Assembly: GCA_040285825.1 (NCBI GenBank)
Contig: JAUPSS010000007.1
Location: 1,466,624 to 1,530,623, forward strand
Direction: 5' to 3'
Length of the DNA: 64,000 nucleotides
Origin: Eukaryota sp. TZLM1-RC
Lineage: Eukaryota; Protista; Metamonada: BaSk clade
This document shows positions 47-14,772 of the stretch, in pieces (position 1 is the stretch's first letter; each line of letters opens with the position of its first letter). A program made the translations under genes and the position numbers. The notes beneath the pieces were generated by a model. The model made no database searches. It saw only the letters and a program-made list of their open reading frames with translations, and was not told the origin of the DNA.

Positions 47-1003
47 TTACCTGGCAATAATGTTGCTCCAAAGATCCAAATGACTCAGAGTGAAATTGCG
101 ATCCAGAGCACGGGCGAGAGCACTAGCGCCTTCGGCAGCAATGTTGTTGCCACGAAGACACAAATGAGTCAGAGTGGAATTGCTCTCCAGAGCACGGGCG
201 AGAGCAATAGTGCCTTCATCAGCAATGTTGTTGCTCCAAAGATCCAAATGACTCAGAGTGGAATTGCCCTCCAGAGCACGGGCGAGAGCACTAGCGCCTT
301 CGGCAGCAATGTTGTTGCCACGAAGATACAAATGAGTCAGAGTAAAATTTTTCTCCAGAGCACGGGAGAGAGCAATAACGCCTTCATTGGCAATGTTGTT
401 ACAACTAAGATCTAATTGAGTCAGAGTCGAATTCCTCTCCAGAGCACGGGAGAGAGCAATAACGCCTTCATTGGCAATGTTGTTACAACTAAGATCTAAT
501 TGAGTCAGAGTCGAATTCCTCTCCAGAGCATGAGCGAGAGCAATAGCGCCTTCATCGGTAATGTTCTTGCAACTAAGATCCAATTCAATGATAGAACCAT
601 CAACCAAACCCTCAACACCCTTCTTTACCTCATCCCCCAATCCATCCCAAATCACATTCGACTTGATGTCTTCCAAAATTTCTTCCTCAGAAGGGGGATG
701 GTGATCATCAATATTGTTCAAAGGTTGATAACAATGGCACCCACTCAACAACGCTTCTTCGAGGTCAGCAATTCTGGTTTCTAAATCAGAATTAGTGCTA
801 CTCAATAGAGTAATTTGATTTTCCAGCTGAAACTGGATTTGGTCCTCCAGCTGATAGTTCCTTGATACTTCATGCGGAGACACTGCAGTTCTGCAGGAAG
901 GACAGGTTTGATTCAAACCCAACCACTCATCAAGGCACGAACGGCAAAAGGAATGGCCACATGAAAGAGAACGGGGTTCAAGAAGCACCCCTCTTGTGAA
1001 CAT
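47..1003 (-). CDS. RING-like finger plus ribonuclease-inhibitor-type (28-aa) LRR protein; may continue past the left edge through a 35-nt intron at 16-50
   Basis: CGHSFCxxC...CPSCR partial RING (first CxxC missing), a coiled segment, then about six LxxLxLxxNxIxxEGxxALAxAL repeats. The stop codon lies within GTAATG...TTAACCCTTAG on the minus strand, a possible intron. Confidence 0.85.
   Translation of the reverse strand: MFTRGVLLEPRSLSCGHSFCRSCLDEWLGLNQTCPSCRTAVSPHEVSRNYQLEDQIQFQLENQITLLSSTNSDLETRIADLEEALLSGCHCYQPLNNIDDHHPPSEEEILEDIKSNVIWDGLGDEVKKGVEGLVDGSIIELDLSCKNITDEGAIALAHALERNSTLTQLDLSCNNIANEGVIALSRALERNSTLTQLDLSCNNIANEGVIALSRALEKNFTLTHLYLRGNNIAAEGASALARALEGNSTLSHLDLWSNNIADEGTIALARALESNSTLTHLCLRGNNIAAEGASALARALDRNFTLSHLDLWSNIIAR
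60..590. repeat. 84-bp tandem repeats encoding the LRRs, including a 168-bp higher-order duplication
   Basis: ccagagcacggg...agagca recurs every 84 bp; units are near-identical in pairs. Confidence 0.9.
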
Positions 1004-1114
1004 ATCTGGATGTTCACCTATGGGTGAGGGAGAGAGGAGAGAATACTTTTTCTTTTTTGAATCGAATTTGAGTTCATTACAACAATACGATCGTCAGTGA
1101 GAGAAATTGTTTTA

Positions 1115-1260
1115 CCAAGCTACCTTTGTAAAGCCGCCTTGATGAAAATTCGTAAAAATTTTATTTTTGATTTTGTGAATCGCTTTCCAGAAAAAATTGA
1201 TCTTATTGAAAACTGTAACAGCTCTTATCTTATTTCTTTGTAACAAGAAGGATTTGTTTT
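1115..1260 (+). mobile_element. Degraded internal fragment of an RT-REL non-LTR retrotransposon (family C-like)
   Basis: agctacctttgtaaagccgcc...gtgaatcgctttccagaaaaaatt resembles 56385-56520. Confidence 0.55.
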
Positions 1261-1606
1261 TTATTTTGTTATAGATTATGGTGGATTGCTTGATAATAAG
1301 GAATTGGAGAATGAAATCTCTAAAGTTATGTCTAAGCAAGAGTTTGATGAATTATATCCGGCTATTGCAAGATTAACTTATCGTGAACTTAAGAACGTAG
1401 TTACTTTATTATTCATTATTCATTATTTTTTATTTTTTATTTATTTTTTAGTTACTCTATTCAATACGTTTTTGATTATATAAATAAACAGTTAGTCATT
1501 TCAATGTTGTTTTTGTTGACTAATTCATAAGCACTAACGTTCTCGTGACTAAAAAAATATTCAAACAACATTTTCAGGAATAATTCTGATGGTTCATTTT
1601 TTGTTT

Positions 1607-1924
1607 TTAATAAATCTCTTTGACAAACCATTTTGAAAAATAACAATCATTTTTAATAACATTCAAAATCATTAATTTTATAAAGTTTCCACCGGAATCA
1701 TTGATTATCACTAGAACCTTTTTTTCTGGTGGCATATAACTATCAAATGTTTGATATTTTGTTTTAATATATCCATTGTTGATTGAAAGTATTGTTGCAC
1801 TATTTATATTATCAATTGTATAGAGATGATCGTAATCGGATAGTGATTTAGAATAAAATTGAAAATATGTTTTACGATGATGATAAAATTCAATAAAATT
1901 ATCTTCATAATATTTTTCTATCAA
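1607..1924 (-). CDS. Small very AT-rich hypothetical ORF, possibly a relic
   Basis: 105-aa ORF rich in N/I/K/Y, no motif recognised. Confidence 0.25.
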   Translation of the reverse strand: MIEKYYEDNFIEFYHHRKTYFQFYSKSLSDYDHLYTIDNINSATILSINNGYIKTKYQTFDSYMPPEKKVLVIINDSGGNFIKLMILNVIKNDCYFSKWFVKEIY

Positions 1925-2235
1925 CAGTGAGATAATTTAATTTTGGATTCATTCAAAGTTTACTTAAATGTACCATTCTTTTGTCAAATAAACGAGATGT
2001 TCTTTTCCAAGCTAAATCATTATAAGCTATTATATTAGTTTCATTTGTTTTAACTTCAACAATTGATCAACATGGTGATAAATTGATTGGTACATCATAT
2101 CTAGATCTACAATATAGATGAACAGCCAGAGATATTAATAGAATGACGAATAGAACAACAAACATTGTTGATGAAATTGTGCAAATACATTAAACAAATT
2201 ATAATTGCTCCTTTTCCTCATTAATTGTTCATTTA

Positions 2236-2340
2236 TTATTTACATAGAAAACACTGAATCATATTTGTTACACAATCAACACAATCAGTATGTTCACATT
2301 TCAAAACAACAAATTCATCATCATCTGAACAAATTGGACA
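2236..2340 (-). pseudogene. C3HC4 RING finger at the C-terminus of a disrupted small gene
   Basis: Manual translation CPICSDDDEFVVLKCEHTDCVDCVTNMIQCFLCK*; upstream frame is broken. Confidence 0.6.
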
Positions 2341-3479
2341 GATATCATTGTATTCAAATGATGGTTTGAAAGATTTTCTGTACAAATTGTGTGTATATCA
2401 TTACTTACTACTTCGAGCCACAATTATTGTAGTGTATCAACATTATGCTCAATAAAATCATGTAATAAACAATCATGTTGCGCAGATTTTCACTCACGTA
2501 TTCATAACATAGCAAGAGTACAATATTTATTTGAATATTTCTACTGAATCTATTATTTTTTCAGGAAATGGTTTTCCTGTAAACACCCAAAAGAACATCA
2601 TTGATGTGTTTTCTGAATTTTTATCAATTCTAAATTTTTTGGTGGTAAGTTTCTAAAATATAGATTCCAATCTAAGCCAAGATTCACTTAACAATTATAT
2701 TAAACAATTTCTTCCTGAGTTACTTGATTGTTTGGGGGTCATGTCTTGAATTCTTGCATCCAATAAGCTGATGGTGGTATATTATTTTAAATTTTTTTAT
2801 TAATATCATCTCAACAGATTATTCGTTCTTGCAATTTCCATCAATTGTTCCCTTTCTGACAAAGCATTGAAATCGTCATCAATTTTTAATTGTCTCTATT
2901 TTTTCTGCAAACAAAACATCTAAATATTGATTCAACGGCAAAACCCACACAACAATAAATAGTTTCATCAGGAATTTGCCCCTTTGTTATTTCAGTCACT
3001 AAAAGTCGTAATTTAGGATTTTCACACTAATATTATCGGGTAAATTATCATTAACCTCTCGTCTCCATATATCTTTCATTTTTCCCCACCATTCTTAAAT
3101 GTCTTTTCAAAATAAACATTGTGAAAAAATGGTCATTCGTATGATTACATGAGTTGCATGTAGTCTTTATGTGCTTGATGTGATCAACTTGTGATCAAAC
3201 TTTGTATGAAAATGTGAGTGAGTAATGTTGGCTATGTGTTATTGGTCAATACAAACTCATAATTAAATTTACAATTGATTTTGTATATATTTGAATTAAT
3301 TGAGTTTACTAATTTCTAAACATTAAATTTAAATAATAGTAAAAAAATAAAAAGTATACAATTGCTTGTTGCAAATTAATAAAACCATAAATTCAACAAG
3401 CACTTTTATTACAAAATCAGTACGCAAAACTAGATGATCTATTGATCAAAAATACTGCACCAAAAAAGCTAAAACAATT

Positions 3480-4200: not shown

Positions 4201-4757
4201 AACCATTGAAGTTTATTGATTTTGATTATTTTAGTTTCTTTTTTTCTTTAATTAAACGATTTTAGGTATTACCGCATTCCAAGCATTTTGAACATTCTTG
4301 ACGCAAGTTGTGATTTTTTTATAGATCTTATTTAGATATATATTTATTTATGGGTTGCGTGCACTCACAGACATCAAAGTGTTCGAAATATTTGCAGAAA
4401 CTGTTTTGAAAAAATACAAACAATACGATTCAAACACAAACGAGGACCGAAACGATTCTTTTTTCGTTTTTTTTACCAGATTTTAAAGTCATAAAATCAA
4501 ATTATGGAAAATTTCCAAAATGTACATACATAGATATAGCATATGGATAGGAGGATCTATTGATGCAATTGGTGTCACCCTGGGCTTCCTGATACTGAGT
4601 TGAAATAATTGACACCAAACAATCAAAAACTTGCAACAAGACATGAACACTTCACAGTAAAATGCAACTTGGGACATGTTGAGCGATTTTGAAAAAAAAA
4701 TTGTGAATAGTAAAAAAGCTTTATTAAGTCGGTAAACTTGACTGACATCATAAACAA

Positions 4758-6290
4758 TCAATCAAACACCTTGTTGACGTCAGCAATCAAATCTGATAGA
4801 TTGAGCTTGGTAGGTGGTTCCTCATGACATAACTGGTCAACTTGAGACAGTTGACCAAAATTACCATCAAAAATTGATTTGATAACAAATTCTCTCCCAA
4901 AAAACCGAATGAATTTTTTAATTATAGTTTTACAAATAGTTAATTGTTGAACAACTTGACTTTCTTCGAAATTTTCAAAATTACCTGTTTGTGTCGAGAT
5001 CTCTACTGAATGCAGAGCAGTCGAAATCCCCCTTGAAAATTTCTTCTTGTCAAACACAACATTCGCCCATCCACCAAAAAACTCTCTCAAAATTTTATTG
5101 AACATTTTCTTTTTGCTTTGCAAATATTTGAGCTCAATTATCGAATTTGTTATTGGAATTTTGGCTTTTTCTAAATTATTATCATTATTGAGTTTTTTCT
5201 TGAAAACCAAACTCCAAGTTGAAAAATGTCTCTTTTTCAAATACTGGAAATTATTTCGCTTGATGATGGAAAATTTCCGAAAAATTACTAAATTATCAAA
5301 ATAGCATCGCCAATTTAAAAGTGAATTGTGTTGAAATTTTTCATTATTTAAATCAAAATATCTACAGTTCAGCTCATTAAGTGCTTGACCAGCCAAGACC
5401 AAAGGGCCAGAAACAGCAGGACTACGGTCATAAAAGGAAGTAAACATGGTCTGATTAACTTGCTGAGACTGTATCACGTCATCTTTAATTTTTTTGAACC
5501 TTTGTTCTGACCGTGATAAAAGACCGCGTTTATTTTGTTTTGAATCACTAGTGAGTTGTTGCCAATGAGAAAAATATAATTTCATTATTTTAAAAAACTG
5601 TTGGGAAATGAATGATTCTAAATTTAACATCTGAAAATGAACAAAGACCGATCGATCGGAAATTTTGGTTGGTAGGTCATGATTAGTCAACAAAGAGCTC
5701 ATATCGTCTTTTACAGAGTCATTGTCAAAATTTGATCCAAAATTTGGTGGTTTTATCAGCGACCTCCATTTACAAAAAACACTAGATTTAAAATTAATAA
5801 ATTTAATAATTAATTGAAAATCTTTAATTAAATCAGAATAGTAATTGAACAAATGAATCCACTTATAGAAATAAGGCGAAAGAATGGACAAATCACCATC
5901 GTATGACGTGGCATCATGAGCTGATGACGTAATCTGTAATGACTTTTGAGAATTCGTATCAACCAAATTAGACAAAGTGCTGATTGTGTCAGAAATTGTT
6001 TCAAAGGTTTGTTGTAGATGCAAAGCTTCACCAGGATTTCTGTTAGCAAAGCTTTTCCTTCTGAAAGGTTTGGATCTTGGCGTAGAGAGTGCATGTTTGT
6101 GAGAAGGGGACTGTTGGTTGGAATGGGACGTGCGAGGGGTCCGGGGGCTGAGATAACGGCTCTTGATGGACTGGAATCGTGCAGATGAAGGAACATATGG
6201 AAGCAATGATGATGTCTTTGGTGATAAAAGAGGAAGCTTGGGAAGTGTAGGACTACACTGTCTCTGGTGAATGATATCTTCAATAGTCAT
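4758..6290 (-). CDS. Hypothetical protein with Sfi1-like (centrin-binding) Trp repeats
   Basis: 510-aa ORF; S/P/R-rich N-terminus; spaced FxxW motifs (FCKWR, YFSHW, HFSTW, FFGGW). Confidence 0.55.
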   Translation of the reverse strand: MTIEDIIHQRQCSPTLPKLPLLSPKTSSLLPYVPSSARFQSIKSRYLSPRTPRTSHSNQQSPSHKHALSTPRSKPFRRKSFANRNPGEALHLQQTFETISDTISTLSNLVDTNSQKSLQITSSAHDATSYDGDLSILSPYFYKWIHLFNYYSDLIKDFQLIIKFINFKSSVFCKWRSLIKPPNFGSNFDNDSVKDDMSSLLTNHDLPTKISDRSVFVHFQMLNLESFISQQFFKIMKLYFSHWQQLTSDSKQNKRGLLSRSEQRFKKIKDDVIQSQQVNQTMFTSFYDRSPAVSGPLVLAGQALNELNCRYFDLNNEKFQHNSLLNWRCYFDNLVIFRKFSIIKRNNFQYLKKRHFSTWSLVFKKKLNNDNNLEKAKIPITNSIIELKYLQSKKKMFNKILREFFGGWANVVFDKKKFSRGISTALHSVEISTQTGNFENFEESQVVQQLTICKTIIKKFIRFFGREFVIKSIFDGNFGQLSQVDQLCHEEPPTKLNLSDLIADVNKVFD

Positions 6291-6524
6291 TACAATTGTG
6301 AGGTGTCATTAGGTGTGGTGGGGGAACCAGAAAATAATCTGAGTCAAATTCTGCTGCAAATCATTCTCAATTCAATTCTATTGCTGAGATTCAACCCATG
6401 TTAAATTGATCTGATAGTATTTATAATCTAAGTTCGTTTGTTGGTTTAAATCATAAACTCTTCAAATTAATATTTAAAGAATTGAATATTTAATTGGGCA
6501 ATAGCTGAAATCGATAGAATGTTG

Positions 6525-7190
6525 TGCCTCACTACGACTTTCACTTTAGCAACATCTGTTCTACAAATTTATGACAATCTCTACTGATTCTGTCTGAACG
6601 TTGAATATGAGATTTCTAGGTATGAGATATGAGATTTATGGACTAATAACTTACCTCATAATTTTCTTAATGAATTTGAAAAATTACAACTACTCATTTG
6701 TTAAATTGTAAACACTTTATTACTTTTAAAAGCCGGGTTCACGATGATGTCAGAGTTCAATTATATTGTATGTGCACGTCTCATAGAATTGAATCTTTTT
6801 TAGAACCTCTGCTGTCAAATCTGTTTGATGCTGAAGATGATTTTCACCAGAATGATAGAAATGATTTCATATTAGCTGGATCAATGGAACCTTAATACTG
6901 ATGTGAAACTTTTTAAAATTGGTGCAAAACAGATATCGCTACGTCTTTCACTTTAGCAACAACCGTTTCACGAATTTTTGACAATCTCTACCGATTCTGT
7001 CTGGACTTTGAATATGAGACTTCGTACTTTTAATTGTAAACATTTTAAAGCAAGGTTGACGCTGCTGTAAGAGACCAATTAGATTGTATGTGCAAGTCTC
7101 ATAGACTTAAAACCTTTTTGAAACCTCTGTTGTCAAATCTGTTTGATGCTGAAGAAATTTTCCACACGACTAATAGAGGTGATGTCATAT
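6525..7190 (+). mobile_element. Two tandem degraded fragments of family A non-LTR retrotransposon (CCHC/REL region)
   Basis: HLLNCKHFITFKSRVHDDVR...LEPLLSNLFDAEDDFH matches 31070-31260; the segment occurs twice. Confidence 0.8.
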
Positions 7191-11084: not shown

Positions 11085-11199
11085 TCATCTGTGAATTTCA
11101 TCGGAAATGCATACATCATGTAGCATTCCTCCATTCCCTTATACGGTTTCCTTTTCAGGATCACAGCGCCCGAAGGCAATACATGGATACAAACAACTA
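11085..11199 (-). ncRNA. Candidate Fanzor omega-RNA scaffold
   Basis: Directly after the Fanzor stop codon: GCC-UUCG-GGC (11168-11177), UCCU-GAAA-AGGA (11149-11160), GGAAUGC...GCAUUUCC stem (11103-11129), closed by CUGUGA/UCACAG (11161-11166 with 11089-11094). Confidence 0.6.
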
Positions 11200-12900
11200 T
11201 CACTCTCTCACCTCCCTTCTAAATGTCTCTGGTCTGATCCCAGTAAAATGTTCAGAAATCGCAATCTCTAGCTGATTTCTTGAAGCGGAAATGTCACTAG
11301 ACCAGCGTTCATCACATCTAGGACATTCAAAGTAAGCATTATTGATTCTTCGAGTATCTTCATGATACACCTTCCTGTGATGTACCTTGCAACAATTGGT
11401 TTTGGCAGATGTCATGTATTCATCTCCAACCTTCACATTGGCAAAGTATTTCTTTACTTCTGTCAGAAACTTCTTAGTTGGGGCTTTGGTGGATTTTCGA
11501 GAAGGTCCATTACCACCATTACCAAACCAAATAATAGTTTCCCTGTTATTAGCTAGTCTCTTAATTTTGTTCACAAAATGAATGAACCTTTTTTGTCTTC
11601 TTATCACAAAATCTTATTTCGTCTCAAAATTCTCTCTGTACTATTGGTCAAACCAAAGAAATTGTTTACTGCTCATCATTCCTTATCAGTGAAGCTATTT
11701 CAATGAGATACCTGTTGAAGCTCTCAACGGAATAAGTGTTCACAGAGGATTGAGTGAGTGGCTGGGGAAAATCAATTACTTTTGCTTTCGGATTCAGTAG
11801 AATTCCAGATTGTTCAACAATTACCCTATTCTCTTGTGAACAATGTCCAGTTGTCCAACCACATAAATTTGAATGGTTTGGATCAACCGCCACGAAAAAA
11901 AGGTCTTCTCTGATGGGAAGATCCTGCGAGCAATCTTGAGACCGTCTAGCAATTTTCCTCGGTCGGTTAGCTCGCCCATTTATTCTCTTATTTCGTTTTC
12001 TAGTGGACTCTCTGAAATAAGGACGACTTTGACCCAATGCTTGAATTTCAGAATTTTTTCGCCTGGTGCACGTCTTTTTGGGTTTCTTTGAAAAAGTGAA
12101 GCGCAATGAGAGTCCATTGCTAGAAACTGAGAAAGTTTTGAATTTTTTCTTGTTAAAAAACTTAAAAGGGTTCCGTAATAATTGTTGGTTAGGATTCAAT
12201 TTTTTGAAATATTCCAGAGCTTGTTGATTAAAAGGAACAAACCCTGGAACTTTGGTGGCAATTGGGGATAAGGCATGTCTTCGAAATACATTTGGGCATG
12301 TACTTTCTAGACGATGTAAAATTGACAATCCCCAATGGCTTATCAACCAACAATTATAAACAGTGACATCCAATTCATCACGCCTCAGGGCACGCGTAAA
12401 CAAATCATTAGATGTTACTGTTTGGTTCCAAATTTCGGAAATATGAAAATGATATTCATCATACCATTGTCTTAAATTTTCAGAAATTGTGGAACCGCAA
12501 ACCACACAACTGGCATACTTTGATGGAGCAGGACACTCCATCAGAACATTAGAGACTTATGTTGAAACAAGAACTTTTTCAAATAGTTGATGAATGGTGG
12601 TTTGTAATTGTCATATTTTAGACAATGCATTCACATAAAATGAAACAGAATAATGTGGACTTGAAAAGAGTGTCTCATTGATTACTAACGGTATTGGCAA
12701 CAAAGGAAAAAAGGGAATGATATTGTTTCCTTATCCAAATTGAGCAGATCATTTCATTTGTTCATTTGATTAAGGATCTCCTGAAGTTGAGTAAGTTGAA
12801 TCGTGGAAGTTTTCAAATGTGTTGATTCCAGGAATTCTGCTGTGAATTTCACTCCTGTTTTCAACTTTCTCAATGTCTTCTCACAGGCTGCAAGAGACAT
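11200..12900 (-). pseudogene. Fanzor1 (TnpB-related RNA-guided RuvC nuclease), compact type, disrupted
   Basis: RuvC-I FVAVDPN, IIWFGNG...KAP, RuvC-II GDEYMTS, CC...CPRC zinc finger, RuvC-III WSSDISASRN, terminal RPETF. Frameshifts at about 11607-11670 and stops in 12541-12900 (candidate ATG at 12900). Confidence 0.85.
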
Positions 12901-13982
12901 GTAGCGTCATTTGACAAAGACAATCATGATCTCCATCAATGGGCTACCTCACTTAAATACACCTACTGCTTTCACAGAACAAAGCCTCGCGACTTGATGT
13001 ATCTAAGTGGATCTACCAAATTTTACTAAGCTATTTGTAGATCGGTCTCAAAAGTTTTTGTTTTTGTATGCTCAGGATATCTATTCATCTCCTCAACAGA
13101 GCTTTTGGGCAAATGTATCTTTCCGGCCACAATTCCGCTTTTTTCTTAATTTAAATATTTTTTGCAGCGGAAATATCTCTGTCATATACTATTTTCAATG
13201 TCAAAATTGGAAAATCTGAAGTTTGAAACCAGACCCAAAATCTGATCTTCCAACCTGAGCAACCTTCTGCGGTCTTTCTCATTTCCGTACTCCGACTTTG
13301 GGATGCATCTGTAACTTCACACACATGATACTCTTAGTGTCATGATTCGGGGACAGAAGGGTAGACATCACGATTGCCATCAGTTCAGCAGCCTTGCCTA
13401 ACGCATCTTGGATTTCTATTCCGTAAATCCTGTACCTATCGGTTATTGTAAGTGTTTCGTTTGACTCAATCACTTTTTTGATCTCAATGTTCATGGATTG
13501 GCTTGATGTCTTCACCGTTGTACTTTCTTCTTGATGTAGATTCTTCCGTTATAAAGTTTTACTGGACAGTATTTTTTTCAGTACATACATCATCTTTTTT
13601 GCCAACACTATTGTTTTCAAGATTGCCATTGAAACATAATACATAAATCATTTCTTCATGTATCAAACCTGCCTTGTATCACTTGTGCATAAGCATGTTT
13701 TTATTGAAAGTGTGAAAACACAATAACATTCAACTTATAAGAGTAACTGTCCGTCATAAAAAGGCATTTCAATGGCGACTTGTTTCACTACTTTTTTGGA
13801 CTGGATTTTTAATCAATTTTGTAGCACTAGCGGTGGATGGACAGATTCTAGATGAATTTGACAATTTTCATTGATCACGCACCTGAATATCGTAAGCGTT
13901 GAGCTGACAAATTTCCAAACATTTACCTAAAAAATAATGAAAAGTTTTACAATCGCACATAGAGAATCAAGTTTGACATAAC

Positions 13983-14400
13983 ATGAGTCAATTCAACAGT
14001 GATTCAAAGAAATGGCTGCCGATACTATCTGAATTCGACTTTGATATAGTCCATGAACCAGGTGAAGATAAGCACTGGGCAGATATGCTATCAAGGAATA
14101 TTGATTTAGATCAAAACGAGGAAACTCCTTATATCTGTATTATAAAAATACCAGATACTTTACTTTCGAATTACGAGATACTTCCACTAGACAATAATTC
14201 TTATTCGGACTTCGAAGATATCCCATCAATCTCATCTCTAAGTAGACACCAGGACCTTCCTATTGTTTCTTCTTGGTTCTCTAAAATAAAATCTGAACAA
14301 CAAATAGCCACAAAAAAAGACCCTCTATTTGAGAAAATGCAATTTTAGATGAAAATACTCAAATTTGGAGAAATAAAAAAATACAATTTTAATTCCAAAA
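13983..14400 (+). mobile_element. Ty3/gypsy LTR-retrotransposon pol relic (RNase H end to integrase linker)
   Basis: KWLPILSEFDFDIVHEPGEDKHWADMLSR matches the RW..L.EFDF.I.H.PG..N..AD.LSR motif. Confidence 0.75.
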
Positions 14401-14419
14401 AGCCGTGAAAATCATCCTC

Positions 14420-14772
14420 ATCATCAAACAGATTTAACAACAGAGGTTCCAAAAAGGATTCATTTCTATGAGACTTACACATACATTATAAATGGTCTCT
14501 TACAACATCATGAACCTTGCTTCTAAAAGTAATTAAATGTTTACAATTTAACAAATGAGTAATTGTAATTTCTCGAGAACATTTACAAATTAAATTATGA
14601 GGTAAGTTATCAGGCCAGATAAGGGAACGAAGTCTCATATTTAGAGTCCAAGCAGAATCGGTTAAGAGAGTACCATAAACTTGAGAAATTGTTGTTACTA
14701 AGGCAGAAGAAGTACTGTCACACATATCTTGTAAAAGATTTGCAAGAGCGGGATTCTTTTTCTTGGCCAAGC
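14420..14772 (-). mobile_element. Family A non-LTR retrotransposon internal fragment
   Basis: LAKKKNPALANLLQDMCDSTSS...HLLNCKH...VHDVVRD is nearly identical to 30860-31210. Confidence 0.9.

Follow-up and report, generated by a model that had tools for sequence, protein, structure and literature searches.

In Fanzors, the RNA-guided nucleases of eukaryotes, the glutamate of the canonical RuvC-II site is replaced by glycine or proline, and an alternative glutamate is found just upstream of the zinc finger (PMC10530073, PMC10711439). In Fanzor1 the transposon end forms part of the scaffold of the omega-RNA (PMC10711439). Here we describe a Fanzor-derived locus in a stretch of 64,000 nucleotides (nt) from the genome of strain TZLM1-RC (contig JAUPSS010000007.1, positions 1,466,624 to 1,530,623), which we call the window and whose own numbering is used for all positions given without a locus name. 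With a probability of nearly nine in ten, its minus-strand segment 11088-12542 is a dead copy of a multicopy mobile element, the only conserved gene of which is intronless and encodes a Fanzor1-like nuclease of 663 amino acids (aa). As a transposon remnant the locus is ordinary, and the greater interest lies in the family from which it derives. The host, Skoliomonas litria, is an anaerobic flagellate and, as had been supposed in an earlier reading made from the letters of the window (hereafter the sequence-only reading), a poorly studied protist. The strains TZLM1-RC (S. litria), TZLM3-RCL and GEM-RC1 are skoliomonad metamonads, and the S. litria genome comprises 31.9 Mb in 16 contigs and is 55% repetitive (PMC11316075). 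The locus sits on a 3.2-Mb eukaryotic contig, 110 nt from an intron-bearing dynamin gene, and its place in a eukaryotic nuclear genome is that of Fanzors by definition.

Copies of the element and their ends

The sequence-only reading had joined two minus-strand open reading frames (ORFs) into one TnpB/Fanzor-like protein, and the homologues bear this out, as both ORFs align over their whole length along single proteins of 590-663 aa. A word-indexed homologue search with ORF1 returned no match; an exhaustive phmmer search with it found 22 proteins, several of them of 540-604 aa and aligning with ORF1 from about residue 145 on. The profile search gave 43 clusters, all from the assemblies of TZLM1-RC, TZLM3-RCL and GEM-RC1 and all labelled 'hypothetical protein'. 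Contrary to the small family that had been imagined, the family profile matches about 129 annotated models, full or partial, in S. litria (the summed cluster members of the TZLM1-RC rows in that search), and the two sister species have more clusters. The cluster closest to the window copy, P0049, has 17 members and shows identities of 94% to ORF1 and 97% to ORF2. Intact copies had been expected elsewhere in the genome and were found at L003 and L004, two of the 12 loci (L numbers) that we examined; their products, P0083 and P0094, are each encoded by an uninterrupted intronless ORF of 663 aa. In several families the ORFs are intact and near-identical to one another, which suggests recent activity. 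The families compared were A, B and X in S. litria, two in TZLM3-RCL and one in GEM-RC1, with mutual protein identities of 30-50%.

The window copy is a member of family A and corresponds to positions 4636-6105 of L003. With five full or longer paralogous copies its DNA shares 97-98% identity, which ends abruptly at 12542 and at 11088, and the flanks differ in every copy. ORF1 (12541-11666, 291 aa) represents residues 213-503 of the intact 663-aa protein, with part of the REC/WED region and RuvC-I, and in tblastn it is 98.3% identical to P0083 over residues 213-509. ORF2 (11607-11200, 135 aa) represents residues 527-663 and is as close to P0083 (97%) as to P0049. Between them lies a broken linker of 19 codons (11608-11668), which contains a TAA stop at 11668-11666 for GAA and two deletions, one of about 10 nt between 11650 and 11649 and one of 4 nt between 11613 and 11612. 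Altogether, the window copy matches P0083 residues 213-509, 513-524 and 527-663. Since the frame is broken by the stop and the two deletions, it cannot make a nuclease. The first 212 residues of P0083 are without a match in the whole 64 kb of the window, and the element DNA upstream of them is entirely lost as well; this 5' truncation is structural. What had been described as a compact locus of about 560 codons is thus a truncated one, with 426 codons in two ORFs besides the linker, and the 212 codons that are gone include the TDG motif of the WED domain, which is missing because of the truncation. The extent first proposed, 11085-12900, began within 3 nt of the true right end, whereas bases 12543-12900, including a 48-aa ORF at 12900-12754, have no homology to the family.

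The search for paralogues also defined one end of the element, as had been hoped of it. The right end, fixed at 11088 in the window, is shared by seven family-A copies whose flanks all differ, and about 113 nt past the stop these copies end with ...GATGAAATTCACAG and then A (T in L012); in an eighth copy, L005, the right end is damaged. The left ends are ragged. Given in L004 coordinates, the left boundary lies at 2226 in L004 and L002, at 2678 in L006, at 2998 in L003, at 3698 in L005 and L011 (with one common composite flank), at about 3722 in L012 and at 4636 in the window copy. Within the 2.4-3.9 kb shared by the family elements we observed no terminal inverted repeat (TIR), target-site duplication (TSD) or conserved second gene, and no TSD was present at six junction pairs. 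Carriage in a eukaryotic transposon, recognised for Fanzor1 by TIRs and TSDs or by a DDE, Helitron or Crypton transposase nearby, was therefore not seen at these loci, where a single DDE_3 fragment lies 1.6 kb upstream in L006 only. The combination of constant right and ragged left ends fits truncation in a right-end-anchored copying process; it also fits one-ended, rolling-circle-type transposition read from the opposite strand, as well as later deletions together with composite duplications.

Further parts of the element were sought and rejected. The upstream minus-strand models of 166-205 aa, considered as a second element gene, are not conserved between families A and B, have no Pfam match and are taken as spurious. 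At L004:3160 there is a 10-nt sequence that matches the right end in inverted orientation; considered as a left TIR, it lies off every copy boundary and shows no further similarity. A hairpin at 13010-13043, considered as a left-end signal, is situated inside the tail of a separate X-family remnant.

The 3' tail as a candidate omega-RNA scaffold

Behind ORF2 the window copy keeps a complete 3' tail and right end (11088-11199, minus strand), with the terminal box ATGCAT-N-GAAATTCACAG(A). In its closing stem CUGUGA (11166-11161) pairs with UCACAG (11094-11089) with a probability of 0.8-0.9, and this terminal domain differs from that of L003 by a single loop base. A terminal box of the form ATGCAT-N3-10-GAAA-N2-3-CACAG is found in five of the six families, family B reading TTCAT and CTCAG there. 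The 64-kb window has a single occurrence of the box (0 expected), and in nine of the 12 loci the box marks the 3' end of a Fanzor gene; one further match, in L011, ends an X-family remnant. Again in five of six families, a CUGUG-like arm situated 48-84 nt upstream is the pairing partner of the terminal CACAG, with a probability of 0.8-1.0, while the closing stem of family X is seen only in shorter context. Two compensatory pairs occur in this stem, U-A to A-U in family B and U-A to C-G in the RCL1 and GEM families.

The sequence-only reading spoke of a strongly structured downstream RNA, of which the strength has to be given up and the conserved, RNA-like domain between the stop and the element end stands. 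The fold energy of the family-A tail is unremarkable, with a z-score of -1.5 for 173 nt and of -2.1 for 131 nt from an intact copy; the other families have tails that are more stable than shuffled sequences (z -3.1 to -5.2). The support for a structured tail thus comes from conservation across families and not from fold energy. Judging from this conservation, it is plausible that the tail is an omega-RNA scaffold that closes at the transposon end, and it could equally be an end signal that acts at the level of DNA.

It is possible, although we think it doubtful, that the right end is no omega-RNA scaffold and serves the transposition machinery purely as DNA, in the form of a single-strand hairpin or palindrome, or else is a piece of leader or promoter that is kept because of the host genes directly behind it. 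GTGAAATTCAC is a near-palindrome at the very end of the element, and the last 11 nt are common to different families, as if these were moved by one machinery. Furthermore, in six of the 12 element copies examined a host start codon follows the right end at a distance of 3-110 nt. However, the stem partner 48-84 nt upstream covaries with the terminal motif, which fits a folded transcript and the position of the scaffold in Fanzors and TnpBs. The two roles are also compatible, the transposon end of Fanzor1 being itself a part of the scaffold (PMC10711439).

The position of the right ends next to host genes recurs. In the window 110 nt separate the right end from the ATG of dynamin, which follows on the same strand; the next gene starts about 3-45 nt past the right end in L003, L006, L007, L008 and L009, and 11 of 12 element copies of the examined loci share their strand with the next annotated gene. 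Right end and start codon are at 11088 and 10977 in the window, 6105 and 6143 in L003, 6105 and 6145 in L006, 5908 and 5936 in L007, about 4389 and 4433 in L008 and about 4386 and 4390 in L009. The same-strand host genes behind the right ends include those for dynamin, a Ras/Arf GTPase, CAF1A, PDCD2 and others.

By analogy with the way characterised Fanzors and TnpBs work, the nuclease of intact copies would bind an omega-RNA with the end of the gene and the tail of about 110 nt as its template, the terminal CACAG stem would close the scaffold, and the guide would come from the DNA just past the right end. The complex would cut matching DNA beside a target-adjacent motif by means of the rearranged RuvC site, formed by the Asp of DPN, the Glu of GDEY and the Asp of RDISAS. 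The window copy could at most provide a scaffold-plus-guide RNA, with its guide from the dynamin leader, for the nucleases of intact paralogues. A bolder version makes the skoliomonad Fanzor1-like elements an active RNA-guided system that spreads in an undescribed way, with guides taken from host gene leaders and with dead copies feeding the nucleases of intact paralogues; each omega-RNA guide would then be copied from a host leader, because the distance from a right end to the host start codon behind it, in sense orientation, is from a few to about 110 nt. We consider this version rather unlikely.

Catalytic site, fold and class

The motifs named in the sequence-only reading (VDPN, DEYMTS, the zinc finger, SSDISASRN and RPETF) were all located, together with the three acidic positions. 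VAVDPNH (RuvC-I) occupies 11873-11893 in ORF1, with the Asp codon at 11882-11884. In ORF2, also on the minus strand, GDEYMTS is at 11407-11427 with the alternative Glu codon at 11419-11421 and SSDISASRN (RuvC-III) at 11275-11301 with the Asp codon at 11293-11295; the zinc finger CCKVHH...CPRC, the canonical RuvC-II site WFGNGG and RPETF are likewise within 11200-11607. The window copy has kept the D-E-D residues and the zinc finger as well as the complete right end, and in its RuvC-III motif Ser stands instead of the Arg of the family (SSDISAS vs SRDISAS). The canonical RuvC-II Glu is replaced by Gly in WFGNGG, and all families conserve the alternative Glu of GDEYMTS, which precedes the first Cys by 8 residues. 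The family therefore has the rearranged RuvC-II of Fanzors.

At the level of sequence, likeness to known proteins is partial. The published Fanzor fingerprint is DPG-x(120-160)-E-x6-CxxC-x(12-18)-CxxC-x(4-8)-D, and the family reads DPN-x156-E-x8-CC..H-x18-CPRC-x6-D, in which the spacings from D to E, between the zinc half-sites and to the last D fit. The TDG of the WED domain is present as LLTDGP in family A (P0083 residue 195), P0003 and P0046; other families have ADG or VDL. For PF07282, the TNB/zinc-ribbon domain that lies between RuvC-II and RuvC-III, the skoliomonad proteins score 21-31 bits, P0004 (28.1) and P0018 (30.7) above the cut-off and P0001, P0003 and P0083 below it. ORF2 matched the TnpB of PDB entry 9nzp with E 0.02; ORF1 alone had no match in Pfam and gave only noise against PDB sequences. 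The family-A protein starts with a zinc-knuckle-like CX2CX4HX4C motif (L003 4001-4060; P0083 residues 3-16) followed by a Pro-rich stretch; the knuckle is absent from the other families, and residues 1-61 are predicted to be disordered, with a predicted local distance difference test (pLDDT) score below 50 in the model.

A structure prediction had been advised as a check, and it found a RuvC/TnpB fold match. We used an AlphaFold2 model of P0049, a paralogue 94-97% identical to the window ORFs, built from a 24-row family alignment (mean pLDDT 65.5). In Foldseek against PDB, ranks 1-6 were SpuFz, with E from 3e-10 (9ceu) to 5e-9, and PpFz, with E of about 2e-8 to 4e-8; GtFz ranked 8 (E 2.5e-4), followed by Cas12g, Cas12f and TnpB, and the first 50 matches all belong to the same superfamily. 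VIA-align gave Z 12-13 for 420-436 residues over model residues 69-634 solely for Fanzor1 chains. For other Cas12 proteins, RuvC and YqgF-like domains the alignment was confined to residues 390-637, which match the RuvC domains of Cas12 proteins and RuvC with Z 10.5-12.8 and a root-mean-square deviation of 3-6 A. The model thus shows the RNase H-like RuvC fold with the D-E-D triad of TnpB and Cas12 proteins, and in the structure comparison a whole-protein architecture closest to that of the solved Fanzor1 structures, which combine a WED domain with insertions, an enlarged REC and RuvC. In addition, an ESM Atlas model of P0083 reached template modelling (TM) scores of 0.63-0.67 over 514-537 residues to giant-virus clusters with DUF8286 and a TNB domain. 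On these models the family is TnpB/Fanzor-type and closest to Fanzor1 by structure, as the sequence-only reading had anticipated in calling it a divergent Fanzor1; we class it as Fanzor1-like, by structure a divergent member and with only a partial match to the sequence fingerprint.

Several observations weigh against this picture of a decayed Fanzor1-like element with a scaffold in its tail. The published fingerprint is matched inexactly (DPN for DPG, x8 for x6, CC..H for CxxC). ORF2 scores 22.8 bits against PF07282 (E 1e-4), under the cut-off of 26.3, and the family profile found in PDB only a 28-residue RuvC-III stretch of one entry (E 0.2). The confidence of the model is middling and the TM-scores to solved Fanzors are low (0.28-0.34), so that the placement of domains is uncertain. 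In Rfam no match was found. Finally, the assembly is the sole source of the stop and the two deletions, since the Logan contigs carry only paralogues.

Some of these points would also suit a genuine RuvC/TnpB-type nuclease outside Fanzor1, that is, a separate eukaryotic radiation from Fanzor2 or another TnpB that came to resemble Fanzor1 in size and architecture. DPN departs from a near-universal DPG, the spacing from Glu to the zinc finger is atypical, and the first half-site is CC..H. Moreover, no solved Fanzor is matched at sequence level, the family proteins tested have no match to Pfam DUF8286, and no associated transposase, TIR or TSD was found. We nevertheless hold such an origin to be unlikely, as the best full-length structural matches are all Fanzor1, whereas Fanzor2 (9b0l) aligns over only 242 columns with E 0.027. 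The TDG motif is at the expected N-terminal place in several families, and the long disordered N-terminus and the size of 590-663 aa are as in Fanzor1 proteins.

Decay, surroundings and known relatives

The preferred reading, a dead Fanzor1-like copy, has to be set against a working compact Fanzor gene in which the ORF break is an intron or an assembly error and the start lies upstream near 12900. Introns of the host can be very short (31 nt in dynamin), a 70-nt GT..AG interval at 11669-11600 would join the frames, and the window version of the break has not been seen in reads. We rejected the intron model, as intact paralogues read straight through; they are intronless there, with 14 more nt and GAA for TAA. 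In Logan contigs of the same organism, one paralogue covers exactly 11088-12542, with unlike sequence on both sides. It has GAA at 11668-11666, 10 additional nt at 11649/11650 and 4 at 11612/11613, and this GAA with the 14 extra nt restores a single frame. Beyond 12542 it runs on in frame into the N-terminal region of the family (LNFF...), where the window DNA is unrelated, and N-terminal homology is lacking in the rest of the window too. In an alignment of six copies the stop, the deletions and the Arg-to-Ser change occur in the window copy only. The break represents decay and not an intron, since nothing interrupts the intact paralogues at this place, and the working gene is very improbable and already largely refuted. 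A domesticated host gene or a bacterial contaminant, for which the absence of a recognisable transposase speaks and nothing more, is refuted by the comparison of many 98-99% identical copies at different loci with different flanks, and in addition by the 3.2-Mb contig with its intron-bearing dynamin neighbour and by family matches only in Skoliomonas nuclear assemblies.

Next to the element, the dynamin gene starts with the ATG at 10977-10975 on the minus strand and has, as read from the sequence, a first intron of 31 nt (GT..AG, about 10822-10792), which shows how short introns can be in the S. litria genome. On the other side, at 12840-13194 and also on the minus strand, lies a remnant of the X family, a second Fanzor family, with its last codons KIVYDRDISAAKNI, a stop and a 310-nt tail that ends, like that of family A, in GAAATTCACAG. 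The remnant is a high-copy repeat, with a read depth of 30-140 vs about 2.6 for unique DNA, and is 86-95% identical to copies in L002, L005, L007 and L011; as a high-copy fragment of a 3' end it may represent a derivative of the ghost type. A longer, frameshifted X gene in L005 (1165-2953) has the motifs SEFNTS...DRDISAAKNI...PERY. Another high-copy repeat (depth 92-144) at 13196-13700 adjoins the remnant and cuts it at 13195/13196; an inverted copy of its part at 13524-13734, with 83% identity, is found at 3778-3586.

Three places (L005 2564-3698, L011 3300-4500 and window 12543-13194) combine an X right end with a front-truncated family-A copy that follows 300-900 nt downstream in the same orientation. 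L005 and L011 are one composite unit that was duplicated, as the junction is identical; the spacer of the window is unrelated. L001 contains two family-B copies head to head, at 343-2728 (minus) and 4601-6983 (plus), about 1.9 kb apart and each followed by a WD40 gene at about 300 nt, and an inverted segmental duplication is possible there. Retroelement debris at 13983-14770 of the window includes an ORF resembling an RNase H/integrase junction (13983-14348, plus strand) and an ORF at 14770-14486 (minus) with the C-terminal Cys/His motif typical of reverse transcriptases of elements without long terminal repeats (non-LTR); a related piece in L002 adjoins an RVT_1 gene.

The skoliomonad Fanzor1-like lineage is not found in the literature searched. 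No published link of Fanzors to metamonads was found there, metamonad names are absent from ten supplementary files of the Nature 2023 Fanzor survey, and the Skoliomonas genome paper (PMC11316075) nowhere mentions TnpB. The three Skoliomonas genomes hold many divergent families, so far from known Fanzors in sequence that hidden Markov model (HMM) searches barely detect them, and these extend the known host range and sequence space of Fanzor-type nucleases. P0083, P0094, P0003 and P0004 are offered as candidate nucleases with a short and well-delimited tail. Skoliomonads also provide a system for studying the biological role and the mobility of Fanzor elements, as their complete assemblies show right ends, ragged left ends and gene-proximal positions directly.

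Among the known systems, ISDra2 TnpB and Cas12f (OMEGA and type V-F) have the same RuvC fold as the skoliomonad family, with RuvC-I, RuvC-II, zinc finger and RuvC-III in identical order, but they have the canonical RuvC-II Glu, are prokaryotic and smaller, and are linked to the IS200/605 TnpA. Fanzor2 and IS607-type TnpB, such as the Fanzor2 of Acanthamoeba polyphaga mimivirus (9b0l), have in common with the family the alternative-Glu RuvC arrangement and the C-terminal core of RuvC and zinc finger. In contrast, their structural match is much weaker than that of Fanzor1, the family protein is about 200 aa longer, and no IS607 serine-recombinase gene is in or beside the shared unit or in any of the 12 loci. 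The highest whole-chain structural likeness is to the giant-virus and eukaryotic proteins with DUF8286 and a Cas12f1-like TNB domain of the ESM Atlas clusters, from which the family differs in the missing DUF8286 match, in PF07282 scores near the cut-off and in its metamonad hosts, which are neither Nucleocytoviricota nor fungi.

The best near-whole-protein structural matches are SpuFz1 of Spizellomyces punctatus (8gkh, 9ceu-9cez), GtFz1 of Guillardia theta and PpFz of Parasitella parasitica. Like these Fanzor1 proteins, the family has a similar size, a disordered N-terminus and a rearranged RuvC-II with the alternative Glu by the zinc finger; its elements are likewise multicopy, with a single ORF, full and partial copies and a short structured non-coding tail up to the right end. 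Unlike them, the family has DPN for DPG and the CC..H half-site, and it is only 12-15% identical to them, with no HMM-level match. The SpuFz1 elements have conserved inverted repeats at both ends (PMC10432273), whereas in the skoliomonad elements, with no TIR or TSD seen, the right end is constant and the left is ragged. In S. punctatus there are also 'ghost' loci, with ends and omega-RNA but no ORF, and the window copy and the X remnant have similarly retained an intact right end and tail despite the loss or breakage of the nuclease gene. The S. punctatus ghosts, however, are internally deleted and keep both ends, while the skoliomonad remnants are front-truncated copies.

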